Source: Octopus sinensis (Eukaryota). Taken from it: 64,000 nt of DNA. The position numbers and the translations under genes were made by a program. The stretch covers positions 62,001 to 126,000 of the forward strand of contig NW_021832125.1 of the NCBI RefSeq assembly GCF_006345805.1. Direction: 5' to 3'. Positions within the stretch are counted from its first letter, which is position 1, and every line of letters begins with the position of its first letter. Of this stretch, positions 405 through 60,173 are shown in pieces. Below the pieces are notes generated by a model. That model made no database searches, had not been told where the DNA came from, and worked only from the letters and a program-made list of their open reading frames with translations.

Positions 405-981
405 TTTTAGACAAATGTGTTTATTGTCAAGTATTGGCTATTTATTTATTAGCTAGTCCAAAAAATTGATGGCAACCAAGCCACCTATCACTCCAATCAT
501 TGCCAGAGGTCCTAGAGACCGTTATATCGCAGATCTTATAGATCTCAGAAGATATTCAGAAATAAATCGATCAAACTCGTGGGTAAACTTAAATAATTAT
601 TTATATGAAGGTTCTAGTGGTCATTGATTCGTTTACTAAGTATGCTGTTGTAGAATTAGCAAAGAATTAAAGTGCATTGGAAATTTCATCTCTACTTGAG
701 AATATTTTTTACGTTATTGGAGAACCCGTCATTCTCCAAACTGATAACGGAAGGGAGTTTCGCAATTCTGAAATGGATAAGCTGTGTGAATTTTCTAAAA
801 TAAAGCATATCTGTGGAAGACCTAGAGCACCTTGGGTACAAGGACAAGCTGAAAGGTTTATTTTAAAGCTATAATAAAAAGGTTCAACCAATCAATTAAA
901 CGGTGGATATCCTCAACAAGTGCTTCATCTGGAAGTTTTGGAGTTTACTTCAACATTATAAAGAGGATCGTATATGATTAC
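405..981 (+). mobile_element. Ginger-like integrase pseudogene, copy A, 5' part, with three micro-introns
   Basis: Splicing 431-456, 583-610 and 856-881 gives CVYCQ|SKKLMATKPPITPII...DLIDL...W|VLVVIDSF...QTDNGREF...QGQAER|FNQSIKRW (H2C2 plus rve core). In-frame TAA at ~668. Interrupted at 981 by a hAT. Confidence 0.85.
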
Positions 982-1791
982 TAGGGCGATTTTTTTTTAA
1001 CCTGAAAAATAAAAATTTTAACCTAAAAACTTTAACTTTATTAACCTAAAAACTAAAAAAATTAACTCAATAATTTAACTTTGTAAATAAACAATAAAAA
1101 CACTAAAACTGTTTGTTGCACATACAAATTACATAATTTTCTAAATTTTCTTGTAGAAAATTTCGGTTGGATCTTAGAAAACTCTTTATTAGAGAGAAAG
1201 TTCTTTCAACCGAGCACGAGGTCGGCTGACAATTCAGAAGTAATGCATACTCGGCAGGAGATATTTGTGAATTAGTCATTCTAATTATGTTCGAAATATC
1301 GTTTGTTTTAAGCCTTTTAATTATGTATTCTTTCCAACGATTCTAAACAATAATATGCCTGTTCAATTGTGAAGCGCGTACTTTCAAATTTCGTAATAAT
1401 ATCTGCAATAGCGACATTTACTCGAAAACCTGGAATGTTTGAATAGCTTCGGATAAGGTCACATAGACTGCTCACTAATACATTGTTTCGAAGACTTTCT
1501 TTGGCTGTTCGAACTAGATATCCATCATCCGCGAATGACTCGAAAATATTTTGTACTCCGATCAGATTTTCTGAATAGTAAGTAGCGGCCTTAAGGCAAC
1601 TCCCCCATCTTGTCAAATGCACACGAGGTGGAATGGCGATGTTTCTGTCTTTAAATATTCGTTATGATTTGATTGACACAGCATCTAGCCTTCGATGGTG
1701 AGGGTACTCGCACAGAACCTCCGTAAAACAATTCTCTAAGCCATGGCATAGATAGTTTGTTTAGCGGAATATCGGATTTAATGAATGCTCT

Positions 1792-3834
1792 ACGATATGC
1801 GAAGATCTGTTTATCGGATACGATACGTCTCGGACAATCTGGTCGGACCTTGAGGTATCAATGAAAAAGCATTTGACACCGTATCCAATACAAAACATCT
1901 CTTCGAATATACAAATTGAAAAACTTGATAAAATTCTCAGAGAAGCTATACTGGACTTTCTCCGAAAATCTTCAATCAGGAAATACATCATGTCAAATAC
2001 TAACAGAAAAACCCGGATTGACGAATCTTTGGGAAAACTTATAAAATGGAAGGGAAACCTTGAAAAGAAGCTAAGACGATGCAGTGACCCCATAGATCGT
2101 ATTCGTCTTCGGGATAAGATTCGTACCGTGAAAATAGAGATAAATGATGTCGCAAAAAAACATTCAGACCTTGCTTGGAAGAGTCAATGCTCGAAACTGA
2201 ATAAGAAAAACCCTCATTTTTGGAAGGTTTTCAACAGACTGAGTAATATGGAGAACAAAGGAGAAGAGATCCGACTAAAAACAACTGAAGGAATAGATAT
2301 CCCGCTCGATGAAGTTCCCTCACATCTGCGAAGTCAACTGGCAAAAGTTCAAGAGGTGGATCCGATCGACATGGTTCCGAAAGAAGTTATATGTGAGGCT
2401 CAGAGAAGTCTAAGAGCTAATTTGAGTCATACGGGACCACTGTGCAGAGACATAACGTTGGAAGAAACGTATGCCGCAATTATGAGCTGCAAGAATAATG
2501 CACCCGGCCATGACTACATTCCAATTTCTGTATTCAAACATGCTCCAAATATTCTCCTACGATACTTGACCGCACTATACAATGCAAGCTGGAGACTTGG
2601 ATACGTACCGGACTCTTGGAAAAAGTCAATCGTACGTATGATTCCAAAGCCTGGAAAAATAAAGGACCATGCAGAGAACTATAGGCCGATAAGCCTAATA
2701 TGCTCCGTCTCTAAAATTATGGAACGGATTGTCTTCACAAGACTTTCGAACTTCGTAGAGGAATCAGGTGCACTTGCAGTAGAGCAGTGGGGATTCCGAC
2801 GAAAAAGATCCTGTGGTGATTGTTTCGGAGAACTCGAGAAAGTCATCTCGCTTAGTCTTGCTAATAATACAGCGACTATTGCTATCTGCCTCGATGTCTC
2901 AAAAGCTTTTGACAGCGTATGGCACCTGGGCCTCTTGGAAAGTGTCGCCAAGAGCAAACCCGGGTCTAAAACGGTCAATTGGCTGAAGAGCTATTTATCA
3001 ATGAGAAGGTCATACATACGATGCGGAAACCGTTTGTCGGAATCTGTCGATCTCAAAAGAGGGGTACCTCAAGGCTCGGTCTTGAGCCCCCTGCTTTTTA
3101 ATATTTACGTTGCTGATATTCCAAAACCGAAAGATCCTACCAGTCGTCTCATGATCTACGCGGACGACATATTAATAACGGATGCTTCGTGGAGAAAAGA
3201 CATCTCGTGGAGGAAGTTAAAAGGATACGTGACAAGAGTGGAAGAATGGTGCATATCAAAAGGACTGACGCTTGCAAAAGAAAAGTGCACCGCCACTTGG
3301 ATTGCAAAACAGGGAGCAAAACGAAAACCGCCGAGAAACCTCTATGGGTTTACAGTAACGGAGAACCTGAAATACCTTGGGGTTGAAGTTGGATCCAAGG
3401 GTTCTTACTTCAGATACATCGACTCGAGGAGAAGGAAATGCGCTCAAATTCTCAGGAGCATAATTCACTTCCACCTTTCCCCGGAAACGTTTTTATATGT
3501 TTATAAAACGTGCGTCGAACCATTGCTTACCTACGGGTTCGAGGGATGGTATCCTACTGCTGAAAGGGATGGCATTATCGCTAAGCTCGAAAAGACGAGG
3601 CGATATGCCATCAAATTGGCAAATGGACTCCAGTTGGACCAACCCATCCCTCAAGTGATGGAAGACGCGACGGAAACGGTTGGAAGTGTTCTTGAGAGAG
3701 CCTTTTCTTCTCGAATTAAATATTAAAAAAAAAAAAAGAGGGAAACAACGAAGAAGAGGCATACGTTGTCTCATTAACTTTCTCCCTCTTTTTTCGGCTT
3801 TTCCGTTAATAAAAATTCATTCATTCATTCATTC
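1792..3834 (+). mobile_element. 5'-truncated LINE (clade uncertain, CR1/Jockey-group-like)
   Basis: 11-bp TSD ATGAATGCTCT at 1781-1791 and 3835-3845. AATAAA plus (ATTC)5 tail. Removing it rejoins the hAT frame DDWALQVTRAFIKSDIPL. Confidence 0.92.
1861..3726 (+). CDS. Non-LTR reverse transcriptase (621 aa, uninterrupted)
   Basis: YRPISL, QWGFR, LDVSKAFDSV, GVPQGSVLSPLLFNIY, YADD and KYLG motifs. Confidence 0.95.
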   Translation: MKKHLTPYPIQNISSNIQIEKLDKILREAILDFLRKSSIRKYIMSNTNRKTRIDESLGKLIKWKGNLEKKLRRCSDPIDRIRLRDKIRTVKIEINDVAKKHSDLAWKSQCSKLNKKNPHFWKVFNRLSNMENKGEEIRLKTTEGIDIPLDEVPSHLRSQLAKVQEVDPIDMVPKEVICEAQRSLRANLSHTGPLCRDITLEETYAAIMSCKNNAPGHDYIPISVFKHAPNILLRYLTALYNASWRLGYVPDSWKKSIVRMIPKPGKIKDHAENYRPISLICSVSKIMERIVFTRLSNFVEESGALAVEQWGFRRKRSCGDCFGELEKVISLSLANNTATIAICLDVSKAFDSVWHLGLLESVAKSKPGSKTVNWLKSYLSMRRSYIRCGNRLSESVDLKRGVPQGSVLSPLLFNIYVADIPKPKDPTSRLMIYADDILITDASWRKDISWRKLKGYVTRVEEWCISKGLTLAKEKCTATWIAKQGAKRKPPRNLYGFTVTENLKYLGVEVGSKGSYFRYIDSRRRKCAQILRSIIHFHLSPETFLYVYKTCVEPLLTYGFEGWYPTAERDGIIAKLEKTRRYAIKLANGLQLDQPIPQVMEDATETVGSVLERAFSSRIKY

Positions 3835-4360
3835 ATGAATGCTCTGGTTACTTGTAGAGCCCAATCATCATTTTTTACATATTGGTCAATATTTGTTTGG
3901 TGTGATATGGTCAGATAATCTACAAAAAATAATTTTTATTTCGAATAAACTCAATGAATTTTGATGTTTCTGTGAGGATCGATGAGAATTTACAAAATGC
4001 CTTTTTTCGCATTTAATATTACACAAACAGAGACGACAATATAATACACCATCCTCAAGAATCATAAATTCTTGAGGATAATCCTTAACAATGGCTTTAG
4101 CTTTGATTTGATACGATTTTGCTATCTTAGGCATGTCAACCAAAAATTTTTGCTACAAAATGTATTATTAATCGTTAATTTAAAAATTTAATAAATTATA
4201 TTAAAAATTATAAGGTTAAAATAATTTTAACCTCAAAATTTTAAATTTTAACTTTTTAACCTAATAATATTGTTTAATATGTGTCACGCGCCATAAATGA
4301 AACGCGTGCCTAAAGTGAAACGCCGTGACCTTGAATTTAACCTTCAATTAAGCTCTTGAC

Positions 4361-5109
4361 CAGGGGTTCTCAACCTTTTTAGCTCCAAGCCAGTAACTCG
4401 TTTGCAATCCGAAGTGCAGCCACTGCTGATGCGTAATGAGTTTGTTAACTCTTTTAATTTCTATTTCCTTTATAAAGAAATAAAAGCTAAAAAATCTACA
4501 AAAGGCGTTGTAACTAAAAAGAAAGTATTATTTGTTTATTAAGTTTTTGAAATCGGAATAAGTAAAGTCGAAGAAGTTCGTAAAAGCTGACTCAAGTGAT
4601 TATCCGTGAGCTTGTTACGATATTTATTTTTTATTCGAATCATTTTACTAAATATTGATTCGCATAAATATGTAGATTTAACATTGATATATTCATATAT
4701 GCATTGTGTGTTATATTTTTGAATTTGTCTTGAGGAATTAATTCGTAAAAATTAACAATAGACGCATTTTTGAACAATGCCGCCAGTTCTATATCATGTT
4801 GTAAACTAATGAGTTCTAGTTGAATTTTGCAGGCGCATCCTTAATTTCCACGCTTAATGGAGTTGCAAATATTTTCATTAAAGGAAGGAATTCTTTAAAA
4901 TTCTAAAAATTAAATTTATATAAATGTATCCCGAAACGTGCTTCAAATTGATTAATTAAATCACCAATTATGGATATGTTTAACCTTAAGAATGAATAAT
5001 TAAATTTAGACATTATTAAAAAATTAAAAAAGTTAGTTACTCTAGAGGGGCCGCAAAAAAAATCCTGGGGGCCACATGCGGCCCCGGGGGCCGCATTTGA
5101 GAACCGCTG
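4361..5109 (-). mobile_element. Non-autonomous hAT (internal deletion derivative)
   Basis: TIRs CAGGGGTTCTCAA / TTGAGAACCGCTG. 8-bp TSD CTCTTGAC at 4353-4360 and 5110-5117. STYLCESIFSKM remnant on the minus strand. Confidence 0.9.
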
Positions 5110-5171
5110 CTCTTGACAATTATCAAGTCAATATTAAAGATGATTGCGCACTTTGAGATAATATTATCGAA

Positions 5172-6408
5172 ATGAGATTTGCCAACATTGTAAAGGATGA
5201 TCAGGAGTATAAGAATATTCTTGATTTTTTAATAAATAATACAATACCAGAAGATTTTTCAAGACTAAAAAGATTTCGTTTTCTCAAAAAATGTAGAAAT
5301 TTCGTAAATTCTGGAAATACTATTAAATCTAATGATAGGTGTGCTATATTATAAACAATCTGATGGAAACAAAATATTGGTAATTGCCTCAAATGATTTC
5401 GAATCCATGAAACTGCATTGTGAAAGGATTCATTCAATTTATCACTATGGATTTAATAAAATGGAAGAGTATTGCAAAAATAATTTTTGCATAATCAATC
5501 GAAACATAATTAGGGATGTAATATCATCATGCCACAAATGTCAGCGAAGTCAGCCCTTAAAGACAAAATATCCACTAGTCAACATAGTAGCCAAAGAACC
5601 TCGAGAACGGTTCATTCAATAGCTTATTTTTAGCTATCAAGTTGATTTAGTCGATCTTTCGTTTTATGCAGATATAAATGATTCCTATAAATATCTTATG
5701 AATGTCATAGATATTTATTCAAAATTTTACTTTGCTAAAAAAATAGAAAATAAAGAAACAGTTACAGTTTCGGAATCATTGAAAACTATATTTCTTTCCT
5801 ATGGTCCACCAAAAATTCTGCAGTCTGACAACGGAACAGAATTTGTTAATTCAGAAATAACGTCATTATGTGAAGAATTTAAAATAATTCATAAAAGGGG
5901 ACGTCCAAGACATCCAGAATCACAGGGACAAGTGGAGCGTTGCAATCAAACCATTTGCAGATGGATTCACAAAGAACTCACAGACAAACAGAAAAAATGG
6001 GTGGATGTGTTAGAAAAAATTGTATATCAGTACAATATTTCAATTCATTCTTCTATAAATATGTCACCATTTATGGCTTTTTTCCGAACAAGAGGATATA
6101 ACATTTCTTATTATAATGATGATGAATTAATTGAAGAACATGAAAATCAAACTATCATAAATGACAAATATCTTGAAAGAATGGAACGAAATTTTTCAAA
6201 AACATTGAAAGAAATTGCAATTGGAAATAATGTTTTGCTGAAAAAAGATTTTGATACAAATCAAAGGACGAAGAAGCGAAAATTAGAATCTTTTTATCAT
6301 CAACAAATCTTTACTGTTGAAGATTTAATTTCAAATAATAGAGTTAAAATAAAAGATCAAGATGGAAATGAAAAAATAGTATTTAAATCACAAGTTAAAA
6401 AAATTTAG
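5172..6408 (+). CDS. Ginger-like DDE integrase with H2C2 zinc finger, spliced
   Basis: H..H...CHKC zinc finger. The 24-nt intron 5610-5633 joins ER|YQVDLVDL. Core LQSDNGTEF...SQGQVERCNQ. The first junction near 5314-5338 lacks a GT donor. Confidence 0.8.
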
Positions 6409-6748
6409 ACAGGTAAATTTTCAGGTTAAAATATTTTTAATTTTTTGGTAATTTTAAAATGGCTAACCATTATTTAAATAAATTGTTAATCTTTCAAACG
6501 ATAATAATAAAAAATTGATTTCTCGGTTTTATTCCTGTTTTCATCAAAGGATTGTTAATTTTATTTTCGAGGTTTTTTGTGGTTTTCTCAAGGTTCACAG
6601 CGTTTCACTTTAGGCAAGCGTTTCATCCATTGCGCGCGACAATATGCATTTATTTATAATAAAATATAGTTAAAAAATCATTTAAATTATTATTTATTTA
6701 CTATTATTAAATTTTAACTTTTTTAACTTAGTTCGCCCTAATGATTAC

Positions 6749-7198
6749 AATCGAACAAAACATGACACGACCAAGAATATTCCTTTTCGAAGTTTTATGG
6801 GAATTAAAAAAAGACCAGACGAAAATGAAATAAATGCATTAATGGCATTCGATGGAACTGACCCAGAAGAAGAAATAAATTACGAAAAAAATGAATGCTT
6901 GGAAGATGACCAGCAGAATATGAAGATTCTGGAAAATCTTCAAAAAGCAGGCGAGAAAATGAAGAAAAAAAGAAAATGGCGATATGATGAGGAAAATATA
7001 AACGTGGGAGATAAAGTGATTATTAGACATGATTATGATGGAAATGTTTCAAACAGAAAGTATCCTTTGTATGATGAAATACAAACAAATATGTATACAG
7101 TGATTAATCAAGAATTTCATAATTATGATCTAGAAGATATGGAAAAAAATGTAATCAAAAATGTTAATATCTCGAGACTTTCTAAAATTTTAAAATAA
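6749..7198 (+). mobile_element. Ginger-like integrase copy A, 3' part
   Basis: After removing the hAT, IVYDY joins in frame to NRTKHDTTKNIPF... and ORF 6797-7198. Confidence 0.85.
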
Positions 7199-9999: not shown

Positions 10000-10975
10000 A
10001 CGTGAGAATGGTTTTGTTGTATCTATTACAATCCTTTGTTGAAAAATTAATTAATTATATTGAAACTGGCTTGATAGAAGATGAAACACAAAGGAAAGAA
10101 CGTTTTAAAATACGTTCTCTCTCAAAAAAATTTTATTTATGAGCAATCTGTGCTTTTCATTGTGAAAAATGGTAAAAAACTAAGATTCTTCACTATCGAA
10201 CAAAATGAATTTAAGATGAAAACAATTGAGGTAAATATAAAATCAAATTTTGTAGGCTGAACACAATTTAAACCATTTTGGTCGTGATAGGCTTTATTCC
10301 AAACTCTGTGAAGAAATTTATCCGATTACGAGAAAAGAGGTCCTTACTGTTGTAAGCCGGTGTGAAGTTTGCCAGGTTTAATATTTATGAGCAATATAGG
10401 CGATGCGTTTGATGGCCACTAAACCAACTATTACTCCTATTATAGCTTATGAACCACGAGATCGTTATCTCATAGATCTAATTGAACGAAGATATGCTGA
10501 TATTAATGATAGGTATTCATGGGTATTCGTGATTTAATATTGTAGTTGTTAGTATTAATAGACTCATTTTCAAAATTTGGAGTCGTTGAACCTGCAAAGA
10601 CAAAAAATGCTATTGAAATTTCAAAATTAATAAAATCAATTTTTTGCACCATTGGACATCCAATTCTTTTGCATAGTGACAATGGAAAGGAATTTAGAAA
10701 CTCCTTGTTAGAGAATGTATGCAAGGAGTTTGGAACTAAACAAGTTTTCGGCAGGCCAAGAGCACCTTGGATTCAGGGCCAAGTAGAAAGGTCGCTTAAG
10801 AAAAATTTAATTATATAGATTCAATCAATCTATAAAAAGATGGATATCGGCTACAAGTGCTACGAATGGAACATTTGGGAGATATTTGGATATTATTAAG
10901 AAAATTGTGTATGACTATAACACAACAAAACATGATACTACGAAACACAAACCATTTGACGTGTTTATGAGAATT
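10000..10975 (+). mobile_element. Ginger-like integrase pseudogene, copy C (family of copy A)
   Basis: Introns 10231-10255, 10376-10399, 10523-10545 and 10791-10818; the last three are at the same positions as in copy A. LHSDNGKEF...QGQVER|FNQSIKRW. 3' end lost at the Helitron. Confidence 0.85.
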
Positions 10976-13900
10976 ACTAAAAACCAAACAATTCATAATA
11001 AAATTAAATCACTTGAAATGTTTACTGCAGACGATGATACGAGAGCAAGATTTCAACATGATTCATCGTACAGGACATTTATTTAATCAGTTTATTGTAG
11101 ATATGTATGCAAAGATAGAAGCAGAGACTTCTCTACATTCGTTTAAATCAGCGAAAACTAAGAGCTGAGGAGTATATACATCTAAGAGATGCAATAATTA
11201 ATGATGGTAATGTAACTGATGTAGGTCTAATGGTTATTTTGCCGTCGTCATTCACGGGAGGACCAAGATATATGCATGAACGCACACAAGATGCGATGAC
11301 GTACGTAAGAAATTACGGAACACCGGATTTGTTTATCACTTTTACATGTAATCAAAAATGGCCAGAAATTAGTGATAACATATTTATAGGGCAAAAGGCA
11401 GAGTATAGACAAGACATCATTGCGAGAGTTTTTAAACGGAAAGTCGATAAGATGATGGATCTTCTCACAAAGGGACAGATATTTGGAAAGACAAGATGCC
11501 ACATGTATACAGTAGAGTGGCAAAAAAGAGGTTTGCCACATATACACATATTGTTATGGTTAATCACTAAAATTAGGGCTACAGAGATAGACGATTGCAT
11601 ACGGGCAGAATTGCCAAATCCAAGTGAAGATAGAGAATTATAGGAGATCATCAAAAGAAATATGATACATGGTCCATGTGGCATGTATAACAGATCATCA
11701 CCGTGTATGCGGTGATATGTGTATGCGAAATGGTAAGTGTTCTAAAGGGTACCCTAAAAACTTAATATATAATACGCAAACAAGTGAAAATGGATTTCCG
11801 CTTTACCGAAGAAGGGGCACAGCTGAAGGAGGATTTACTGCAACTCTCCACGAAGGAAAAGAAAATAACAGTTGACGACAGGTGGGTGGTACCTTATAAT
11901 CCACTGTTATGTAAGATTTTTGATGCTCATATTAATGTTGAATTTTGTAATTCTATTAGATCAATTAAATATATATGTAAATACATTAATAAAGGGTCGG
12001 ATCAAGCAATTTTTACAATTAAGCAGCGTGACGAGCCAAGCTTTTTTCACCATGGACGATTCATCTGTAATGAAAGAGCATGGAGAATTTTCGGATATCC
12101 GATTCATGAAAGATATCCATTAGTAATGCATTTAGCGGTGCACTTGGAAAATGGACAAAGGATATATTTTACAGAAGAAACTGCCCGTAATCAAGTTATG
12201 AATCCAAAAAATTCAACGCTTATGGCCTACTTTGAATTATGTCGGACTGATGAATTTGTGAAGACAATTTATTATGTTGATGTTCCTAGATATTATACGT
12301 GAGAAGTGGCCGGAAAGAAATTTAAAAGAAGGATAAGAGGAGAGCCAGTAAACGGGCATAACGGTATTGTAAGTACGGATGCATTGGGTAGAGTATATAC
12401 CGTGCATCCAAATAATTTTGAATGTTATTGTGTTAGGTTACTTTTGCACAACATTCGAGGGCCAGAATCATTCACTGATCTGCAGACTGTCAATGGTGTA
12501 CTCTGCGAAACATACAGAGAAGCCTGTTTTAAATTAGGTATTTTAGAGGATGACAACCACTGGAATCAGACTTTAACAGAAGCCGCAATTGCAGATTCCC
12601 CATCGCGACTAAGGTATTTATATACTTTGATGCTAGCCCATTGTGGGTTAGCAAATCCTAAGCAACTGTGGGAGGGGCATCGAGAAAGCATGTGCGAAGA
12701 TATATTAAGAGAGAAGAATAGATCGACTTTTGATGAAGAGATTTTCAACATTGGATTAATCATGATAGACAGATTGCTAATATCTGTCGTAGGTAAGAGT
12801 GTAAGTGATTTTGGTTTAACAATCAGTGATCTTCATAATATAAATTCTTTAGATGAGCATTATAATTTAGAAGAACTTCAAAAAATTGTGGAAGAAAGAG
12901 AACAAAGCTTATTACCTGGGCAGTTGGAAATATACAGAGAAATTAACCGAGTCATCCAAAAAGAAAATGGTTCTATCATCTTTATTGATGCACCAGGTGG
13001 TACAGGTAAGACCTATCTTCTAAATTTATTGTTAGCAAAGGTGAGAAGCGACAATCAAATAGCATTAGCAGTTGCATCGTCTGGAATTGCTGCAACTCTT
13101 TTAGATGGAGGTCGAACAGCACATTCAACATTCCCTTGACCCTGTCTTACAATACTGAACCGGTTTGTAATGTGAAAAAAAATTCAGTTGCGGGTTATAG
13201 AATTATGAATTCTAGGTTAATTGTTTGGGATGAATGCACAATGGCTCATAAGGGCGCATTCGAAGCAGTCGACAGAACATATAGAGATATCAAGAATTGT
13301 GAGTAACTGTTGTTTGGGGGAGCAATAGTTGTATTGGCAGGTGATTTTAGACAAACTCTGCCAATTATTCAAAGAGGGACGCCTGCGGATGAATTGAATG
13401 CCTGCCTCAAATCGTCATACCTGTGGACACACGTCAAAAAAGTAAGCTTAGATGTAAATGTACGTGCACATTTACAAGGCGTCAATAGCATATTTCCAAA
13501 TATCCTTTTAGATATTGGAAATGGGGCAATTACTTCAGATATACAGGATCAGAAAATCAGTCTACCGGAAGAATTATGTATATATGTGAATACAGCAGAA
13601 GAATTATTCAGTTCAGTATATTCTGAACTATCAGAACACTACAGGAATTTCGACTGGCTTCGTGAACGAGCTATATTAGCTCCGCTAAATGATGAGGTAC
13701 TTAATATAAATTTAGATTTATTAATCAAAATCCCTGGAGAAGAAAGAATATATAAATCGGTGGACGTTATTATGGACCATGAAAGAGCCTGCGAATATCC
13801 GGTTGAATTTTTAAACTCCTTAGATCCCTCTGGAATGCCGAATCATCTTTTAAAGTTAAAGATAGGCGTTCCAGTGGTTTTATTACGAAATCTTGCGCCA

Positions 13901-14378
13901 CCTAAATTATGCAACGGAACGAGGTTAGTTATCAAAAATTTGATGGCTAACGTAATAGAGGCGACGATATTAACAGGTAAGTATAGAGGTGGGGATGTTT
14001 ATATTCCACGAATTCCGATAATTTCTGATGAATTACCATTTAGATTTAAAAGGCTGCAATTTCCTTTGAGGATGAGTTTTGCAATGACAATAAACAAGGC
14101 CCAGGGACAGTCATTAAAGGTAGTTGGGTTATTTTTAGAGAGTGAGTGCTTTTCACATGGACAGCTGTATGTGGGATGCTCGAGGGTAGGCAGAAGAGAA
14201 AATTTATTCATATATGCCAAGGAAGGACGGACGACAAACATCGTTTATCAACAGGCGATAGAATACGGTTACATTAAACCATGTAGTTTTATACATCTAC
14301 ATAAACTTATAGTTGTTTGATGAAACAAACCCTCCGCAGGAGCTAGGTCGCGGTGAGCGAAGCGAGCTGCCGAGCTAG
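10975..14378 (+). mobile_element. Helitron RepHel pseudogene, 5'-truncated
   Basis: Rep motifs PDLFITFTCN, EWQKRGLPHIHIL and KYICKYINKG. PIF1-like helicase [25 protein letters not shown]-rich subterminal hairpin and CTAG end (14375-14378) followed by T. Several frameshifts and stops. Confidence 0.95.
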
Positions 14379-16090
14379 TTATAAATAAGAAATAAGTAAA
14401 AAAGGAGATTAATAGAAAAAAATCGAAAAATATCACAAACAGTATAAATAAGTAAAAAAGGAGATTAATAGAAAAAATCGAAAAATATCACAAAAATTAT
14501 AAATAAGAAATAAGTAAAAAAGGAGATTAAAGGAACAAAATCGAAAAATATCACAAAAATTATAAATAAGAAATAAGAAGAAAGAAGATTAATAGAAAAA
14601 ATCGAAAAATATCACAAAAATTATAAATAAGAAATAAGTAAAAAAGGAGATTAATAGAAAAAAATCGAAAAATATCACAAAAATTATAAATAAGAAATAA
14701 GTAAAAAAGGAGATTAAAGGAATAAAATCGAAAAATATCACAAACAGTATAAATAAGTAAAAAAGGAGATTAAAGGAATAAAATCGAAAAATATCACAAA
14801 AATTATAAATAAGAAATAAGAAAAAAGAAGATTAATAGAAAAAATCGAAAAATATCACAAAAATTATAAATAAGAAATAAGTAAAAAAGAAGATTAATAG
14901 AAAAAATCGAAAAATATCACAAAAATTATAAATAAGAAATAAGTAAAAAAGGAGATTAAAGGAATAAAATCGAAAAATATCACAAAAATTATAAATAAGA
15001 AATAAGTAAAAAAGGAGATTAAAGGAACAAAATCGAAAAATATCACAAACAGTATAAATAAGTAAAAAAGGAGATTAAAGGAACAAAATCGAAAAATATC
15101 ACAAACAGTATAAATAAGTAAAAAAGGAGATTAATAGAAAAAATCGAAAAATATCACAAACAGTATAAATAAGTAAAAAAGGAGATTAATAGAAAAAATC
15201 GAAAAATATCACAAACAGTATAAATAAGTAAAAAAGGAGATTAATAGAAAAAATCGAAAAATATCACAAACAGTATAAATAAGTAAAAAAGGAGATTAAA
15301 GGAATAAAATCGAAAAATATCACAAAAATTATAAATAAGAAATAAGAAGAAAGAAGATTAATAGAAAAAATCGAAAAATATCACAAAAATTATAAATAAG
15401 AAATAAGTAAAAAAGGAGATTAATAGAAAAAATCGAAAAATATCACAAACAGTATAAATAAGTAAAAAAGGAGATTAATAGAAAAAAATCGAAAAATATC
15501 ACAAAAATTATAAATAAGAAATAAGAAGAAAGAAGATTAATAGAAAAAAATCGAAAAATATCACAAACAGTATAAATAAGTAAAAAAGAAGATTAATAGA
15601 AAAAAATCGAAAAATATCACAAACAGTATAAATAAGTAAAAAAGGAGATTAATAGAAAAAAATCGAAAAATATCACAAAAATTATAAATAAGAAATAAGA
15701 AAAAAGAAGATTAATAGAAAAAATCGAAAAATATCACAAACAGTATAAATAAGTAAAAAAGGAGATTAAAGGAACAAAATCGAAAAATATCACAAACAGT
15801 ATAAATAAGTAAAAAAGAAGATTAAAGGAACAAAATCGAAAAATATCACAAAAATTATAAATAAGAAATAAGAAAAAAGAAGATTAATAGAAAAAATCGA
15901 AAAATATCACAAACAGTATAAATAAGTAAAAAAGGAGATTAAAGGAACAAAATCGAAAAATATCACAAAAATTATAAATAAGAAATAAGTAAAAAAGGAG
16001 ATTAAAGGAATAAAATCGAAAAATATCACAAACAGTATAAATAAGTAAAAAAGGAGATTAAAGGAATAAAATCGAAAAATATCACAAAAA
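14379..16090. repeat. AT-rich minisatellite, 29 units of ~54-64 bp
   Basis: 29 copies of TCGAAAAATATCAC counted by eye. Units mix alternative sub-blocks (AAACAG/AAAAAT, GGAG/GAAG, TAATAG/TAAAGG). Confidence 0.95.
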
Positions 16091-21651: not shown

Positions 21652-21819
21652 ATGTAGATCATCACCCCGGACGATATAAACGGGCCGGACGCTATAAGTC
21701 ACCACAATTATTAATTGACTAATTATATAATTAAGAGGAAGAATTATTAATTGACTGTTAGGGAATTGATTTAGCGGATATTGGGGATTCCACTCCCAGT
21801 TGTCAGCCACGATATATTA

Positions 21820-23309
21820 TGTCGCGAACTACGCTGGCGACCAGAGCGACCTTCATTGTTGACAAGATTGACAGGGCGACCTACATAGTTTGACACTAAT
21901 TACTGGCTAAAGATAATTGCTAAAAAATCAAAAAAACTTAACATTTTTTATCTCTATTCATAGTAACTATTTCGTAATTCGATCTAAATGTTTGTTAGGA
22001 AAGACAACTAACCATTAATCTGTATTTAGACATTATATTTTTTACTTTTCCCTTTTCTTCATATGGGGATTCAAATCTATGTAGCTTCAATGACGGATTC
22101 GTCCCACAATCTTTTATTATTCGTTTCTAAAAATAAATACATCATAAATTTACCATTAACTTCATTTTCGACAAACGATGACTCGTTATTTTCATCTAAA
22201 TTATAAATAAGATTATAACCTGGTATTTCATGAATCACAGTGTTTATTCCAGAAATATTCCTAAACTTTTGAAGGGGGTCTCATTGATCGCCGAGTGGTG
22301 TGTCGTATTATAGGAAAAAGTTACTTTGTCTAAAAATTGTTTCCAATTTTTACGTATTTTTTTATGTAGAGAAATTGTACAATAAGACCGGTTTCAGTAG
22401 CATGTTGTATAATTTGATTTTTAGAAATTTTTAGTTCCTTCTTTATCCATCAGTTTTGCCTTACCACGTGTCAATGTTTGGTTAAAGCGCTCAATTACAT
22501 CCTAATTTATTTCAAATTTATAAACTTGTGACTGGGGATGGTTTGGTTTTCAATTAATATGTTTGATTTTATTTTCTCCGCATATCTGATCCATCAGTTG
22601 ATTTTTGAATTCTAATCCGTTGTCTGTTTGTAAAATTTGACAATATCCAATTCTTCTAACATCAATAAGATCCGCCTGGAATCTTTTATTTTGACTTCTT
22701 GCCGTTACATGGTAATTAGAATCGGATACCTAAGTATGTTTAATAAAAAATACTTTTAACGGCCCAGCAAATTTACAAATTTCGCAGTCTTTTATAATTT
22801 GTTCGATAATAGGGCGTTTCACAGTAAAATAAAATTCACAGCACTTCTTATGAAGCTTTAGTATTCCCCAGTGGCATTCTTGGTGAATAGCGAATGCCAG
22901 TGTCTTCATCTCTATTTAATTGTCCAAAAAGATAACCAATTTGTGTTTTTGGTTATTATCGTCCTTTAGATAGAGACTATGAATTAGGAATATCAAATAT
23001 ACCGATCATCAATTATCATAAATTGATTCGCTTTTTTAATAAGTTTGTATTTTTCGGATTTAGTTGTAGTTTGTACGGGTATTTGGAGTAGTGCATTTAA
23101 AATATTTTTATATTCACTTTCATTTTTCACGTAACCTAAGGATTGAGACTATATTAATACAACACCTTTTGGAAGATACCATTTTTGTTAATTAAAATGA
23201 ATAAATTATTTTCGTTTTAATTGAATGTCAAACTATGTAGGTCACGCTGTCAACAATGAAGGTCACACTGGTCGCCAGCGTGGTATGGTCGCCAGCTATG
23301 GGCGCGACA
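21820..23309 (-). mobile_element. Ginger-like element, copy D (degenerate, both ends present)
   Basis: About 80-bp TIRs (TGTCGCG...CGCTGGCGACC). 5-bp TSD TATTA/TGTTA with one mismatch. H2C2 motif, FQADLID, QTDNG, ERFNQ. 24-nt introns 22730-22753 and 22502-22525. Confidence 0.85.
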
Positions 23310-37240: not shown

Positions 37241-37683
37241 AGAACAAGTGTCTCTTGTGCTGGCAGTCTAACCCTGAAACTCGAGAGTGACAAACACTTG
37301 TAGGAGTCCGTCAGCCCTTTTCTGATTGTTCTGTCAAAAATCCAAATATAGTTTAATACTCCGCCAGGGGTGACAGTCTGAGGGGATTTGTGAGTCATCT
37401 CGTGTTAATGTTTAGCTGTCTCTCTTTAATTCTCCATAATTTTAATCTAAAATCGGTCTTATTGGGCCGAGTCATTTTGAAATTGTTGAAATACTGAGAC
37501 CGAATTGAGGATGCCTGAATAGTTGGTGAACGGCTTATATATTTGAATCTAGTCAGTACTGCTTGCTAAAGTAGTCTTCGAACTGAAAACAATAGTCAAA
37601 TGGTATTGTAGTCTAATCACAGTAAATCGTTTCTATTATATATGTACAGTATCTGGTATTAGAAAGAAAAGTCTGATTAACAA

Positions 37684-40600: not shown

Positions 40601-42149
40601 CACTGCTCTTATTTCCTCCACTCCAAGCAATCCCCCCTCCGTCGACTGCCTCTCCGTACTCCACACCCCCCTTCTGTCCACACTCACGTACACCCCTCTC
40701 TCTCCCGGCACAAACAACCACTCTTGTTCACCACTCCCTAAGACACCCTGGAGGGCAGAGTAGTAGGGATAGCCCTCCACGAATGACTTGAAGTGTGTTC
40801 GTAGATGACAGTCAAGTAGGTGGGGAGGCCCACACTCCCTCAGAATTGTATTAATGGCGAGTACTGCCTCCCCCACTACACAATGACCAACTCATCACAC
40901 ATTGGAGGAGAGTGCGGAGTCGGGCATTCCCCTCCTCGACTGCGGAAGCGACGTCAGGGAGAGTGGGAATGAAGTCACGACTGGTCTGAGAGTGAGGTGT
41001 GAGGATGACCAGACAGTCGATGTAGAAGACAGCATTGTGGTGGTCGTGGGGAATGCGGGCGTGGGTGAGTGCGCGGATGAGTGCGGGGATATCGTTGTCA
41101 CGGACAGAGTGGGTGATTGTGTCGAGGAGAGTGCCAACTGTGGATGAGTGGTGGAATGTGACCATTCACCAAGTCGAGTGTCATCTGAATCTCAGTTTGA
41201 TTGAGGTATAGTTCGTATATGTCATCAGGGTGGGCAGTAGTGCGTCTCTGCTTGTCCTCCCTCCTCCTCTGCATGTCCGAGTAGTACCCCTCGATGTGGT
41301 CGACCACCACCCATTCCAGTCGTGCAGTCGGGTTGGAGAGGAGTGCCAGCAGTTCCCCATCTGGGACTCCCCGGTCGATTGCCTCGTTGATGGCGATGAT
41401 GGCGGCGTGCACTACTGGTGAGGGCGAGGACTACTTTCCGCGTCCTCGTCGGAGAGCTGGGATGAGGTGAAAGAGGACAACCTGGTCGGCCAACATGCCC
41501 GATATTTTGGAAAAGTTGGGCAATTCGAGTCCATATTTGTCGAGCTGTCGTTGAATGGCCGTCAATTCGTCGTCTAGGAATACAAGAGGAGTGCAACTGG
41601 AGAAGACAGCCACCCCGAACACACTCTTAATCCTGTCGGCCATCCCTCTCCGGGCCAGATAGTAACTACGAATGTGGGAGGAGACCACCTGAGGGCGTGG
41701 ATGCAGAACACACACTTGGGCATGTTCTTCATGTCGTAAATGTCCGTCGTCTCGGGGTAGAACACCTTCATTATACTCATCCCCTTACCGAGGGCAGTCC
41801 CACCTTCCTCAGAAACCGCAAAAAGTGGTTTATGTTATCAGTGTGACGATAGTGCAGTCCACGGGACACCTACAATCAGTCCTCACACTACTTTGTATGT
41901 TCTCTCACTGTCGAATATTTTATTCTTTGGCACAAGCACTGGGTCAAAGTGGTGACTTAGTTGCGCCAGGATCACTCCGTCCCGCAGCATCTCCTCCAAT
42001 TCACACACTTCCGGAGTCTCCTGCTCACTCACGTATTCGAACATCCAACTGTCCTCATCACACTCACTCTACTTTCGAGCTTCCTCCAGGTGACACAGAT
42101 ATTCGTACGCCTTCTCCTCCTCTCGTTTCCTGTCCACATCACACTCCAT
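37684..42149 (-). CDS. IQGAP1: Ras GTPase-activating-like protein IQGAP, multi-exon with 22-24 nt introns
   Basis: ATG at 42149. AYEYLCHLEEA, CH domain (FYPETTDIYDMKNMPKCVFCIHAL), IR repeats, degenerate WW, IQ motifs, GRD-leading region (IGMLIRNKI), C-terminus NVNLLIHLINTKFY*. First introns 42049-42072, 41870-41891, 41766-41788, 41666-41688, 41574-41597. Confidence 0.95.
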
Positions 42150-47338: not shown

Positions 47339-48210
47339 TGTCGTGATCCACGCTGGCGACCATCAGTTGACATGTGATGTATTTTTGACATTAATTGCTA
47401 CCATCAGTTTGACAGATGATGTATTTTAATTGATGTATTTTTGTATCAATTATAAAAAAACTAATGACATGTTAACACTTAAAAAAATTAACATTTTTTA
47501 ACTCTGTTCATAGTAACGATCCTAGTTTCATTTTGGAATTCGATCTAGTAGTCTGTTATTCTAATGGTAACTTACTGGTAGTCTGTTATTTGACATCACT
47601 TCTTTCACTGTTCCCTTTTCTTCATATGGGGATTCAAATCTGCTTAGTTTTAATGATGGATTTGTTCCATAATCTTTTAATATTCGAACCTATAATAGTA
47701 CTAATTAATTATACGTTATTCCCTTCTTCAAAATCATACTTCGATCTGTGCACTCCCATCTTTTTATTTATTTTTTTAAAATACGGTGAATTCATATCTG
47801 GGGACGTAAAATTAAAAATAGTGTTATTCGTTTCTAACGATGCCTCAATATTTTCATCTAAGTTATAAATGAAATAAAAACTTGGTATTTCACTAATCAC
47901 GGTGTTAATTCCAGAAATAACCCTAAACTTTTTGAACGGCGTCTCATTTATTGTTGTGTGATGTGACGTATTATAGGAAAATGTAACTTTTTCTAAAAAT
48001 TGTTTCCAATTTTTAGTTCCCTCCATTTCCATCATTTTGGCCAGAGCACGAGTTAAAGTTTGGTTAAACCTCTCAATTACAAACTTTTGAATTGATGACC
48101 GCAGAATCCCTGCTTTTCTCAAGCAGTAGTTTGCCTTATGTTTCAAATCAGCATAAAATTGAAGAAGCATTCTCTCCGCTTTATTACTGACTGACTCCAG
48201 GCCTCTCAAA
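47339..48210 (-). mobile_element. Ginger-like fragment related to copy D
   Basis: TGTCGTGATCCACGCTGGCGACC end. IERFNQTL...SYNTSHHTTINETPF. Confidence 0.8.
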
Positions 48211-48882
48211 AATTCTTTTCTTTGAAGATAAAGTCTTTCTTTGTTTGCGGGTTTTAATTGGATACGACTGTCTATAAAAATTCGACGAATATTCTTATCG
48301 ATCTACTCCAACTGGAAGGAAAATTTTTATTTTAAATAATTAGTTAGAGAGGCTGTTAGTGAGGTAACATAAGGAGACCTTCGGCATTCCTGCCTTTTCG
48401 GTCCAGCACACACGCTCGCCTCTCTAATGTAATAGTTAGCTCAATATCAATCCAATGTAATAGTTATAGACTATAACTATTACCGTGTTTCGTGAGAAGG
48501 GAATATTTTTTCCTATAATTTTTGGATTTTCTTTGAATAAGAATGATGCACATTTTATCCACGCTTCTTTTATATATTTTCTATCAGAAAAAGGTTTCCA
48601 ATGCTTCGCAATAATATGAGAAATAACGTAATTAGTAGCACAGGTTGAATCAGATTGACTGTTAACGAGTGTTCTGAGTGATTCTGATTGTTGAGAGTTC
48701 TTTTTAACTGAGATGCAATTGTTTCTCTTTGTTAATCATTAGTTTTCTCAGATAATGATTTGTGAATAGTTTGAAAATGGCGTTTTATAGAAGATGTTCG
48801 GCAAGAGATTTAACGGACCATAACACATATAAAGCTTCGTCTCCTAAAAATAAAATACACTTAAACCTCTCTATATTGCCAC

Positions 48883-49313
48883 CGAACTGAGTAGGATGTC
48901 TCTTCCACTGAAAATATGCATCCAGAGGCATTTCTGATATGCACTTTGAAAGGAAAATGATATCTATTTTTGATTAATTAATTAATTTATATTACGTTTT
49001 TTAAAATTTTGTTTTTTGGGCAAATTTGAATTAGTTGATTTAAAATATTCACCACCATCAACAAGAAGCATTGGTTGAAGCACTCTTTATTTATTTATTA
49101 TTATAGCATATTCCGTAAGGACATAGACAGAAAAGAGTTATATTCCTACACGTGCCACACACGACACGACCTTCTGTACCAACGATTTCCAGCTTTCGCG
49201 GTTTTTGGCCAGTGTCCGAAGTTCGTCATGGTTTTCTTTAAAAGCCTCTCTATTTATAAAATAAAATATTATTCTTATTCTCATTTAAACAAAAAAAGAA
49301 ATAATTCTTAAAA
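48883..49313 (-). pseudogene. Inverted partial duplicate of TDRD12 5' exons containing an RTE 3' stub
   Basis: Matches 23740-24022, including the intron and QSAYQKCLW.HIFSGRDILL, with one frameshift. About 150 bp of RTE tail inserted at ~49096-49250. Tigger TIR directly adjacent at 48858-48882. Confidence 0.85.
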
Positions 49314-52339: not shown

Positions 52340-53310
52340 ACGTAAGGAGATAGCGATTCTTAAGCACTCTGAGTCCAGAAGGTTCCCAATTGAAGAGAAG
52401 AGGAAGGCATCAATCCAAGCATCGCTGCCTGTGTGACAGCCTGCACGAAGGCAGGTGAGCCTGTGTTAGTTAAGTTTCTGAGTAAGTTCTTCGTACAAAC
52501 GACATACAATCTCGTCCAACTGGCGCTGGTTGTGCTCGGACTCAGGCCGCCTTGAGTCAAACCGGACCTTTCATAAGAGACCTGCTGCAACAAAATTTGC
52601 AGACACTTTCCGTTCGGGAAGGTTTCGGAGAATGATGTCTGAGAGAGTGCGGAAGGCAGAATGAGAGGACAGATAAGCCGGAAGAGCCAACTCGGAACAA
52701 AATATCAGACCAAGGCCGCCTCAGCGCACAGGTAAGGTCGCCTGAGACCAGCCAGAATCGTCGAAAGCAAGATTGCATAGGGAGCTCATACCGAGCTTTG
52801 AGATGTAATCGAAATCAGATAGGAGGTCGCTTCTGTCGAAACAGGGTGCATATCTTAGCGTATAAAGCACTTTGCACCTCGCCACAGTTAACTGAACGAC
52901 ATCGTAAAGTGTTTCCACGAAGACGCCGGGGTGCCGTCCGTCCCGAACCTGTCGGTTTGGACAGAGCTGTCTACATTCCACCTTTGAGCAGGGAAAATCC
53001 CTTATATGAGATTCTACCTGCTGTGACACATTCTCCACGGGAACCTAGCCATGTCGGCCGTCGACCCAGGCTTTGCTTCCAATCGCGCCGAAGATCTCAA
53101 AATCCTAAAGTACGATCACCTCTCCAATTTTGCTTTCACGCCCATCGCCGTTGAGACCTCTGGGGTCTTTAGCCACAAGTCGCTTTGTTTCCTACGCGGT
53201 TTGGGGTGAAGAATCGCCAAAAGGAGAGACAACCCGAGAGAGTCCTTTTGACTTCTTCAACGCCTCTCCATTGTTGTAATCCGTGGCAACTGCTTCGCAA
53301 TCCGTGAGGT
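52340..53310 (+). mobile_element. Degenerate CRE-like 3' half
   Basis: QASLPV, LNDIV...GVPS..EPVGL, FTPIAVETSG, QRLSIVVIRGN. Confidence 0.8.
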
Positions 53311-53399
53311 CGGGAGGGCGCCCTAAACCGCGTAGTCTTCAACAATCTTTCTCCCTTTTCTAACTTTTCAAATTGTTGATTGAAAATGAAAAAAATCAA

Positions 53400-56560: not shown

Positions 56561-56998
56561 TATCTATTCTTTACTGACAGCTTTTATTAAAATAAAAATT
56601 TTTGGTTTAAACTCTGCCAAGAATGGGATTTGTCTGTTAACAAAAAATGTCCTCAGTTGATATAACATGACAGTTCAACCATTATCTCTGTCGAACAGAA
56701 ACTTAACAAAAAAGAAATGTATTTCAGCACAGTTAAGGCTTTTGACATTGCATTTGAGATTCTTAAAGTAATGGAGAGATTATGAGGTAAAATATGGGAA
56801 AGTCCTTCAAAATATCTGCAGTGTTTAGTAATCACATTTTCTTTAGTGTCCTCAACGTGTTCATATTTTTCACTCTCACTGCTCTCTTGATTTAAATATT
56901 GGGATTAAACTGAAATTTTATACCCTCCAGAAAATTCTAAAAAGATCTTTTATCCCTTAAAAACTAATAATCATAGCAAATAAAGTATATCCGTAGAT

Positions 56999-57500: not shown

Positions 57501-58010
57501 CCGTAGATAATATGTGACATGGGTAATCAGGCCCCTATGGGCAACTACTTAACAAATTAATAATAATAACTTTAAAAATTAATTAATAGATATTTAATAG
57601 TTATTTTTTTAAACGCGACATCAACACCGATTTTTTTTCACCATTTGAAAATTCGATTTAACCATGAATTTCGACCTATACTTCTACGCGTGAATTGAAC
57701 ACTTCCTGTACCTGCCAGTTTTTCATTGTTTGAACTGCAATTGTTTGTCTGACTGCAGTTCCTTACTTAATTTGCAGAATTATTGTGGCAATGACACTCA
57801 ATCAGTAGGGTAAAACTAATCCAGGGGTCAAAAAAACTGGCTCGCGATCCTTTGATAGCTCTTTAAGTATGCTCTATCAATTTTGTTATTTTTATGCCTA
57901 TTTTTTGTTTTTGTATATGCTTTTTTAATTTGTAAAATTATTTAAAAAATTACAATTTTAGTCGTAATTTGTTCTTATACTTTATAACTAATCAACTCTA
58001 TTATCTACAG

Positions 58011-60173
58011 CAGTGGTTCTCAAACTGGGGTACGCGTACCCCTAGGGGTACGCGAAATTCTGTAGGGGGTACGCGAAAATTTTTTGAAAATCTATTTAAT
58101 TTTCGTTTCAACATAAAAAAGTTATTAATTCTAATTATAATAAAAATCATAATTAAATTAAATAATTAATAATAAAATAAATCTCCACGCTACTAGTTTT
58201 TCTTATGAGTTTACCTGTTAACAAGATTCGAAAATACAACGATAGTTATCTCAACTATGGATTTTATTTTGTGATTAAAAACGGTGTGCCACATCCGCAG
58301 TGTATTATTTGCCAAAAGATTCTTTGCCCTGAATCCATGAAACCTTCATTACTTTCTCGGCATCAAGTTTCTAATCATTTCGAAACTATCGGAAAACCAA
58401 ATGACTTTTTTAAGAACAAAAAAGATAATATTCGGAAAATAGACGATTCTTTCAATTTTGACATTAATTTTTTACTATCAAAACTCTCTTACATGATTTC
58501 ATATCGGATCGCAAAAGCCAAAAAACCACATACAATTGCCGAGAATCTTATTATACCGTGCATTAAGGACATGTTTGAATGTTTCCCTGGCAATAAATTG
58601 GAGCATATTGTTCGAAAAATTCCATGTTCAAATGATACCGTCAATAGAAGAATACGAGATCTATCCGAAAACATAAAAGAACAAGTTATTTTCTGGTTAA
58701 TTATTATTAGGTCATTACTGAAATAAAAAGTGCTGCCTTTAAAAAATTTTCAATTCAATTGGATGAATCAACAGATGTAGCAAATTGCTTTCAGTTACTC
58801 GTTTATGTGCGATATATTTATATGGAAAATATTAAGGAAGAATTTTTGTTCAACTATTCCTTACCTTTAAACACAAAAGGTTCTGATATTTTCGATGCAG
58901 TTAATTGTTTTTTTGAAACAGAAGGTACATTTTTGATTTTTTACTTATGATAGGCCTATTGTGGCAAAATCTTAGTGCATGCACCACAGATGGAGCACCA
59001 GCTATGCTTGGATGTAACTCTGGTTTCCGAGGTAGAGTACAATCTGTCAATCCAAATGTAAAACATCTTCACTGTATGTTGCATCGTTATGTTCTTGCTG
59101 TGAAGACAATGCCTCTTGAACTTAAAAATGTTCTTGACGATGTTATTAAAATTGTCAATCATATCAAAAAAGTCCTTTAAATTCGCGAATTTTTTATTCA
59201 ATTTGTGAAGAATTTGGTTCAGATGAGAAGGTTTTACTATATCACACAGAAGTTCGATGGTTATCCAAAGGAAATGTTCTTTCCAGAGTGCACAGTTTGA
59301 AGAATGAAATTTATGAATATTTTCTTCGCGAAAATAAAAATTTATATTTATCAAAGTTATCAAATATGTATTGGGGTGTAATGCTATCTTATTTAACGGA
59401 CATTTTTTCGCGAATTAATGCTTTGAATTTATCGGTACAAACTAAGGGAGTTACCATTGTTGACTTTTTAGAAAAAACAAGGTTTTTTACGAAATAATGC
59501 AATATTGTAGGTCTTTTCGTATGAAGCTCCAACTGTGGATAGATAATACAACAAATTCTAATTTTACTATGTTTGATAAGTTGAATGAAAACATTTTCCA
59601 TCTAAAATTAAATGAAATAGAAAATTTAAAACATCAAATAACTTCCCATTTACTTGGATTGAAGAATGAAATTGAAAAATATATACCTGAAATTAATGAA
59701 GTAGATCTTAAGTTTTTTGTCAATCCTTTTTCCGTAAAAGTTAATGTTTTGCCTTCAAATATTCAAGAAGAAGTTATTGAATTAATAAATTCTTACGAGT
59801 CAAAAATCTTATTTGAATCTGCACCATTAATTGAATTTTGGTGTAAAATGACATCAAAATATCACAATATTGGATTTTATATAATCGATTTTTTGCTTTT
59901 GTTTCCGACTACATATCTCTGCGAACAAGGATTTTCATCGTTGTTTAATTTAAAATCAGTTCATCGTGCGAGGCTGAATGTTGTTCATGATATTCGGGTG
60001 TGTCTTTCGTCAAAGGATCCAGAAATCGATAGATTAGTGATTGATAAACAACACCATCCATCTCATTAATTAAATATTTTTTTTCCTTAATTTTTTAAAA
60101 ATCGATAAGGGGTACGCGAAAAATTATTTAGATGGCAAGGGGTACGCAAGGAAAAAAAGTTTGAGAACCACTG
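58011..60173 (+). mobile_element. Complete Buster/ZBED5-like hAT with three micro-introns
   Basis: TIRs CAGTGGTTCTCAA / TTGAGAACCACTG. TSD ATCTACAG at 58003-58010 and 60174-60181. Confidence 0.95.
58205..60069 (+). CDS. hAT transposase, spliced, one frameshift in an A-run
   Basis: Introns 58685-58710, 58925-58953 and 59482-59510 restore QLDESTD, TTDGAPAM, HCMLH, EVRW and TTYLCEQGFS. One-base shortfall at ~59165-59170. Confidence 0.85.

Follow-up and report, generated by a model that had tools for sequence, protein, structure and literature searches.

Animal introns are usually assumed to have a lower length limit of about 30 nt. Apart from the myxobolid myxozoans, the dicyemid Dicyema japonicum is the sole animal reported to have shorter ones (PMC6736024, PMC13644364). 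The median intron lengths of myxobolids are 22-27 nt; the introns of D. japonicum, described as similarly short, show reduced 'GTa..AG' signals and lie in a genome of 36.7% G+C and 49% repeats (PMC6736024, PMC13644364). Among mobile elements, some genes of Ginger1 DNA transposons carry 1-4 canonical GT-AG introns (PMC2836005). Introns in DNA-transposon genes and micro-introns of dicyemids are each known, but their combination was absent from the papers searched, in which no paper on Dicyema transposons was found. In this study we analyzed a 64-kb stretch of eukaryotic DNA from the Octopus sinensis genome assembly (contig NW_021832125.1; the whole stretch is hereafter called the window), in which transposase genes of DNA transposons are interrupted by 16 short GT..AG segments of 23-31 nt. 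We conclude that these segments are probably genuine U2-type (GT-AG) spliceosomal micro-introns in cut-and-paste transposase genes, derived within the lineage and belonging to a dicyemid-like micro-intron genome.

The G+C content of the window is about 37%, with large local swings. Its six-frame open reading frames (ORFs), read by eye, and Pfam searches with selected products showed a pile of transposable elements surrounding two cellular genes, with several of the Ginger-like and hAT genes broken up into short frames. The segments are found in five families of two superfamilies (Table 1). Three families are Ginger-like, namely A together with C, B, and D; the other two are hAT families, called CGGBP-like and Buster-like. 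Fourteen of the 16 segments had been listed in an earlier reading of this DNA (hereafter the sequence-only reading), and all of them were found with the lengths given there. Segments D0 and Db are additions to that list. The sequence-only reading had also spoken of five families from unrelated superfamilies; the number of families stands, but the superfamilies are only two.

All 16 segments begin with GT and end with AG, and their median length is 26 nt. Upon removal of the segments, the encoded proteins became colinear with intronless homologues, in agreement with the earlier statement that conserved catalytic motifs are restored. The homologues used were P0001-P0007 for A, C and D, P0041-P0047 for B, and the 603-aa hAT transposase of the window for the Buster-like element. 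The alignments were gapless at 15 of the 16 junctions, the exception being h1. In the spliced products, the Pfam domains rve and Integrase_H2C2 run over the junctions as single stretches. In Ginger B, for example, rve is matched without a break from profile position 2 to 102 over the B1 junction, which is gapless against all seven intronless relatives.

Exon-side context and base composition are features outside the criteria by which the sequence-only reading had selected the segments. The exon base at position -1 was G in 10 of 16 cases and that at position +1 was also G in 10 of 16, while the flanks contain 17.8% G (P = 9e-5 each). At the 3' end, T occupies position -3 in 14 of the 16 segments, so that the context can be written as G/GT..TAG/G, where the slashes mark the splice junctions. 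The A+T content is 80% in the segments and 65% in the flanking exons. The lengths of 12 segments are not multiples of three, and each of the four 24-nt segments, which are, carries an in-frame stop codon. Retention of any one of the 16 would therefore truncate the protein or shift its frame.

Ginger A and C have three intron positions in common, and a third copy of their family (L001; contig VCDQ01000492.1 of GCA_006345805.1, record positions 143924-164436) contains a 27-nt and a 26-nt intron at two of them. In A, C and L001 alike, exactly 245 nt of exon separate the second shared intron from the third. Identity among the three copies in this exon is about 0.7, 0.8 and 0.4 at the first, second and third codon positions, a pattern that indicates purifying selection on the protein together with saturated silent sites. 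The interiors of the introns, in contrast, are no more similar to one another than shuffled sequences are (P 0.39-0.91). Even so, at both positions each of the three copies retains the GT and AG ends and an intron length of 23-28 nt despite the randomised interiors. Intron position is thus kept in this family while intron sequence diverges, as the sequence-only reading had noticed for A and C. Its claim of a long residence likewise holds for the A/C family, in view of the saturated third codon positions and the preserved positions and splice dinucleotides, and we restrict it to that family. L001 and A form a group in 71% of bootstraps, yet L001 lacks the intron after CQ that is present in A and C (A1 and C2). 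This implies that the intron was either precisely lost or gained in parallel.

Table 1. Transposable elements, cellular genes and introns in the window. Positions are those of the window, and a slash in a peptide marks the junction. TIR, terminal inverted repeat; LINE, long interspersed nuclear element; RT, reverse transcriptase.
Feature	Positions	Strand	Length (nt)	Phase	Remarks
Ginger A, 5' piece	405-981	+			Zinc-finger end and DDE core; 5'-truncated; Pfam rve on spliced product
Intron A1	431-456	+	26	0	..VYCQ/SKKLMATKP..; position of C2; absent from L001
Intron A2	583-610	+	28	0	..NSW/VLVVIDSF..; position of C3 and of the 27-nt intron of L001
Intron A3	856-881	+	26	2	..QGQAER/FNQSIKRW..; position of C4 and of the 26-nt intron of L001
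Ginger A, 3' piece	6749-7195	+			C-terminal domain; resumes from 981 when the hAT element is removed
CGGBP-like hAT	982-6740	-			Inside Ginger A; TIRs TAGGGCGA / TCGCCCTA; internally deleted
Intron of CGGBP-like hAT	3950-3920	-	31	1	
LINE inside CGGBP-like hAT	1792-3834	+			Target duplication AGAGCATTCAT
LINE RT ORF, 621 aa	1861-3726	+			Uninterrupted; Pfam RVT_1
All LINE RT ORFs (three)					621, 767 and 711 aa; all uninterrupted
Ginger B transposase gene	5172-6408	+			Pfam rve; seven relatives
Intron B1	5610-5633	+	24	2	In-frame TAG; ..EPRER/YQVDLVDL..
Ginger C transposase gene	10081-11086	+			Spliced ORF of 301 aa without stop; 3' end lost to Helitron
Intron C1	10231-10255	+	25	0	Within H2C2 zinc finger
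Intron C2	10376-10399	+	24	0	In-frame TAA
Intron C3	10523-10545	+	23	0	
Intron C4	10791-10818	+	28	2	
Helitron Rep/helicase pseudogene	11119-14320	+			Truncates Ginger C; internal negative control
603-aa hAT transposase	19658-21469	-			Intact, intronless; paralogue of Buster-like hAT; Pfam Dimer_Tnp_hAT and zf-C2H2_12
Ginger D element	21828-23284	-			TIRs of about 76 nt (23218-23284 against 21902-21828 inverted, 79% alike)
Intron D0	23002-22977	-	26	2	
Intron D1	22753-22730	-	24	0	..FAGPLK/VSDSNY..
Intron D2	22525-22502	-	24	0	..HPQSQ/DVIERFNQ..
Second D-family copy	47564-48092	-			5'-truncated
Intron Db	47714-47690	-	25	0	In second D copy; ..EEGNN/VRILKDYG..
Buster-like hAT transposase gene	58205-60069	+			Spliced product of about 593 aa
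Intron h1	58685-58710	+	26	0	2-residue gap adjoins junction against paralogue
Intron h2	58925-58953	+	29	1	Gapless against paralogue
Intron h3	59482-59510	+	29	2	Gapless against paralogue
Host gene with DEAD-like helicase motif (VVEEAD) and Tudor-like region	24100-28400	+			
Host IQGAP-like gene	37600-42140	-			Island of 52-54% G+C
IQGAP-like intron	42072-42049	-	24		By homology
IQGAP-like intron	41891/41888-41870	-	22 or 19		By homology
IQGAP-like intron	41788-41766	-	23		By homology
IQGAP-like intron	41688-41666	-	23		By homology
IQGAP-like intron	~41481-41431	-	48-51		By homology
IQGAP-like intron	41162-41138	-	25		By homology

The sizes of the transposon introns were compared with those of the cellular genes in the window. 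The IQGAP-like protein is 34-40% identical to IQGAPs of other animals, and most introns placed by homology in its gene are 22-25 nt long. The description of the transposon introns as host-sized is therefore appropriate. These host introns are G+C-rich like the gene itself, while the transposon introns are A+T-rich; intron composition follows the local context. The second cellular gene also contains GT..AG segments of about 23-26 nt (e.g. 26375-26397 and 27409-27431), which were recognised from ORF continuity only. This gene is located amid the transposon pile, and by eye its putative domains resemble those of TDRD12-type proteins of the PIWI-interacting RNA (piRNA) pathway.

The source of the DNA was also considered. 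Three ORFs of the window were looked up by exact sequence, and none of them was on record. The best named hit of the spliced Ginger C product is the Octopus sinensis protein P0008, encoded on a 1.29-Mb contig of GCA_006345805.1, the one that bears the L001 copy of Ginger. This contig carries a clathrin heavy-chain gene with introns of 19-25 nt, and it has repeats in common with the window at 85-95% identity (window 4727-5077 and 53104-53363). An NCBI gene model of the octopus assembly, LOC115227152, treats a 27-nt Ginger intron as coding sequence and terminates within the intron that follows. The introns of about 20-26 nt are found in fast-evolving animal genes, and the DNA is associated with a cephalopod. 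Dicyemids live in the kidneys of octopuses. Because of the micro-introns, the shared repeats, this habitat and the genome traits of D. japonicum, the window and the 1.29-Mb contig are both most likely dicyemid DNA within the octopus assembly, the evidence for this being circumstantial. Such introns also occur in myxobolid myxozoans (PMC13644364), which, however, are not linked to octopus.

It is worth noting that short segments could also be removed from the DNA itself by developmental elimination rather than from RNA by splicing. DNA elimination and the formation of circular DNA have been reported in dicyemids, and this is the sole point in favor of such an explanation. The ends, the size and the exon context of the segments, however, match those of the host spliceosomal introns, and no excision signals such as flanking direct repeats were seen in the sequence. 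We consider elimination at the DNA level extremely improbable.

Whether the introns are ancestral or gained was analyzed by comparison with relatives. The genes most closely related to A/C (43-59% identity) and to B (36-45%) lie on short contigs, each as one uninterrupted ORF of 340-430 aa, and none of P0001-P0007 and P0041-P0047 has an insertion at any intron site. Several of these relatives come from DNA assemblies, at least two of them (L004 and L005) being DNA metagenome contigs. L002 is a complete intronless element of 2.3 kb with TIRs (GTCACCGTCC termini). No intron position is common to the A/C, B and D families. The Buster-like hAT gene contains three introns, while its 603-aa paralogue in the same window contains none. 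Spliced transcripts of these families were also sought among database proteins, where the best hits were only 45-59% identical. As an observation apart, L005 (ENA ERZ26693861, contig ctg80133_2x_l) carries its intronless Ginger-like gene beside hAT ORFs (FAM200/ZBED5-like) in several adjacent pieces.

The sequence-only reading had proposed that transposases of the different families converged on the small intron size of the host. According to this explanation, the transposases had ordinary ancestral introns, which each family shrank to the host minimum in convergent adaptation to a specialised spliceosome. Hydra Ginger1 genes would agree with this, since some of them have 1-4 GT-AG introns, three of which are conserved in derived host genes (PMC2836005). 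The introns of dicyemid host genes are likewise thought to be shortened ancestral ones, and the introns of A, C and L001 are old. Convergent shrinkage nevertheless appears unlikely to us and was not borne out by the comparison, because the closest relatives are intronless, the positions are specific to each family, the hAT paralogue has no introns and one intron is missing from L001. For these same reasons, we favor the interpretation that the introns are lineage-specific additions, occasionally lost, rather than shrunken ancestral introns. A possible origin by tandem duplication of the flanking exon was considered and set aside: C3 showed 12 of 23 matches to the upstream exon by eye, and the introns are too old and saturated for such a comparison.

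Several observations weigh against our conclusion on the nature and origin of the segments. A scan of the whole window for GT-AG segments by ORF continuity only gave an observed/expected ratio of 1.35, which ranked 69 of 256 dinucleotide pairs and represents no enrichment. A spliced-ORF search yields alternative GT..AG bridges at several junctions. With liberal windows, dinucleotide pairs rich in A and T succeed at 12-13 of 15 junctions, nearly as many as GT-AG does. The spliced Buster-like product gave no Pfam hit, Dimer_Tnp_hAT included, and neither did the 131-aa product of the CGGBP-like element. Intron B1 and the hAT introns are each represented by one copy. Every copy in the window is damaged or truncated: A by a TAA codon and the hAT insertion, B by a frame break, C by 3'-truncation, D heavily, and both hAT elements are broken. 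None of the copies in the window is demonstrably intact. In addition, the identity of the host is circumstantial, and the argument for gain rather than loss draws on a handful of relatives.

Some of these observations would fit the idea that the segments arose by chance, namely as decay lesions in dead, AT-rich copies that happen to be bridgeable by GT..AG. The alternative bridges, the performance of the AT-rich pairs, the lack of enrichment in the ORF-only scan and the fact that most copies are pseudogenes could all be understood in this way. However, the segments are insertions of 23-31 nt relative to intronless homologues, and 15 of 16 lie at gapless junctions. At two positions, each of three copies carries a segment whose ends are conserved although the interiors are unrelated, and G is enriched on both exon sides. 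True decay lesions in the window look different. The Helitron pseudogene has nonsense codons, frameshifts of 1 nt and one small duplication rather than GT..AG micro-insertions, the Tc1 and pogo fragments have 1-nt shifts and nonsense codons, and no micro-introns were seen in these elements or in the 603-aa hAT gene of the window. When the length was fixed and shifts of up to 6 nt were allowed, GT-AG explained 15 of 15 junctions and no other pair more than 8 of 15, although this test is partly circular. A chance origin is therefore very unlikely in our view.

The ORF-only criterion is powerless in this sequence, and its result carries no weight against calls that are anchored by homology. Restoration of an ORF is by itself not evidence for an intron; our case is built on homology and comparison. 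In line with this, dynamic programming for the longest spliced ORF was rejected as stand-alone evidence. It recovered Ginger C exactly, but it produced wrong bridges in Ginger A, in the hAT gene and in the G+C-rich host genes.

The assignment of A, B and C to the Ginger class is based on the Pfam domain rve, which scored above the curated cut-off in all three. For Integrase_H2C2, the score of C passed the cut-off and that of B fell slightly short of it. Ginger elements combine a DDE core and an H2C2 zinc finger in a stand-alone gene, and the relatives are contigs with a single gene of 340-430 aa. The 5' piece of Ginger A contains one in-frame TAA at 668-670, and its 3' piece aligns to the C-termini of the relatives P0001-P0003.

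Ginger B, for which candidate TIRs were found at 4277-4334 and 6588-6645, has a second frame break at 5317-5338. The sole gapless repair of this break is the removal of a 22-nt AT..AG segment; the canonical alternative, a 46-nt GT..AG segment at 5293-5338, would remove about nine conserved residues. The 22-nt segment may represent either an intron whose donor site has been lost or a plain lesion. Its position is about one codon from that of intron D0 in Ginger D. Ginger D is a pseudogene with in-frame TAA and TGA codons, a 1-nt deletion and an insertion of about 82 nt, and it has lost the region of the first catalytic D. The counterpart of intron Db in this copy (22150-22180, minus strand) is a GT..AG segment of 27 or 34 nt, depending on how the nearby 1-nt lesions are read.

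The names of the two hAT families are labels taken over from the sequence-only reading. The CGGBP-like element is flanked by an 8-bp target duplication, ATGATTAC, at 974-981 and 6741-6748, as is characteristic of hAT elements; the name refers to a presumed likeness to CGGBP1. When the 31-nt segment and the LINE are removed and one copy of the target duplication of the LINE is kept, this element has an open frame of 131 codons, counted from the ATG at 4134. For the Buster-like element, membership in hAT is based on its identity to the 603-aa hAT transposase, which is 34% over 571 aligned residues, and on a tblastn match with E = 5e-43. Its gene is also shifted in frame by 1 nt at a run of A near 59166-59171, a lesion that is not an intron. 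In a second Buster-like copy at 29.4 kb, homology begins just past h3, and this copy is hence uninformative on h3. The 31-nt intron of the CGGBP-like element was also sought in a hAT-like fragment at 48.4-48.9 kb and was absent there; it is located at 3920-3950 on the minus strand. This fragment, a second CGGBP/hAT-like N-terminal one (48439-48973, minus strand), has in-frame stops and frameshifts, and it contains a possible 23-nt GT..AG segment (gtttaagtgtattttatttttag) after '..FGGNIE'.

The elements at 405-7195 are nested. Ginger A is split by the hAT element at 982-6740, which in turn is split by a LINE at 1792-3834. Besides the LINE, this hAT element holds Ginger B as well as a piece of a different hAT element (4542-4830, minus strand). 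The Helitron is followed by a tandem array of 29 copies of a 56-bp unit (14390-16090, 86% matches), and fragments of Tc1 and pogo elements are also present in the window. G+C-rich palindromic motifs of the GGGCCGC...GCGGCCC type recur near several element ends (5040-5100, 21600-21700 and 57990-58070), and G+C-rich palindromic termini were also observed on the intronless relative L002.

We propose the following mechanism for the presence of micro-introns in these elements. Because the copying of a DNA transposon takes place at the DNA level, any intron that it acquires would travel with the element. Elements such as LINEs copy through RNA, and their uninterrupted RT ORFs are as expected. Translation of the transposase would require prior removal of the introns by the host spliceosome. 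Over a long period, selection would hold the splice dinucleotides and the size class, while the interiors of the introns would drift. The size match between transposon and host introns could result from one spliceosomal and mutational regime acting on all introns of the genome, rather than from adaptation family by family.

It is possible, though we regard it as rather doubtful, that introns no longer than 30 nt are newly born, and sometimes precisely deleted, within transposon coding sequence of a genome known only for intron shrinkage, and that the transposases are thereby locked to hosts able to splice introns shorter than 30 nt. The transposon families would then be time-stamped natural reporters of the birth of minimal introns, and the elements would be limited in their horizontal spread, such as into the cephalopod host. 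A role of the introns as a host-range barrier or as a silencing checkpoint, or a regulatory use of intron retention, is plausible but speculative.

The transposon introns would constitute independent evidence, from outside the host genes, that an animal recognises segments as short as 23-31 nt as introns. They are candidate intron gains in a lineage thought only to lose intron sequence, and copies of the transposons could be used to date the gains. In practice, genes of this kind are misread by standard annotation, as the model LOC115227152 shows. For the annotation of genes and transposons in micro-intron genomes, and for the screening of cephalopod assemblies for contamination, intron models should therefore admit lengths of about 20-30 nt.

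Dependence of a transposase on host splicing has precedents. The transposase mRNAs of the hAT element Ac and of the P element require splicing by the host, and the third intron of the P element is spliced in a germline-specific manner that gates activity. By the standards of their hosts, the introns of those elements have an ordinary size, and their regulated retention has been demonstrated, whereas here a close paralogue is without introns. Tiny introns are also known from ciliates; those of Paramecium reportedly follow a '3n-with-stop' rule, described by Jaillon and colleagues in 2008. The window resembles ciliate genomes in its introns of 20-30 nt and in the stop codons of all four transposon introns whose length is a multiple of three, four being too few to test the rule. 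It differs from them in its standard genetic code and its animal genes. Introners (PMC12130899) similarly tie mobile elements to intron gain, but the relationship is reversed in the window, where introns are found inside transposon genes. Moreover, with only 23-31 nt the segments fall far short of the length of an element, and they have no common sequence family.

The closest described transposons are Ginger1 and Ginger2 (Bao, Kapitonov & Jurka 2010, PMC2836005). The elements in the window are like them in having a stand-alone Gypsy-integrase-like DDE gene, H2C2 and TIRs, with neither RT nor gag. They differ in that their introns are 23-28 nt long and no OTU-type C-terminal domain was detected, and their assignment to Ginger is at the superfamily level only. 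The closest described introns are the host micro-introns of D. japonicum and of myxobolids (PMC6736024, PMC13644364), with which the introns in the window share the length class, the 'GTa' and 'AG' signals and the A/T richness. Those host introns, however, reside in cellular genes, occupy positions that are ancestral for metazoans and have become shorter, whereas the introns in the window reside in genes of mobile elements and have no counterpart in the closest relatives.

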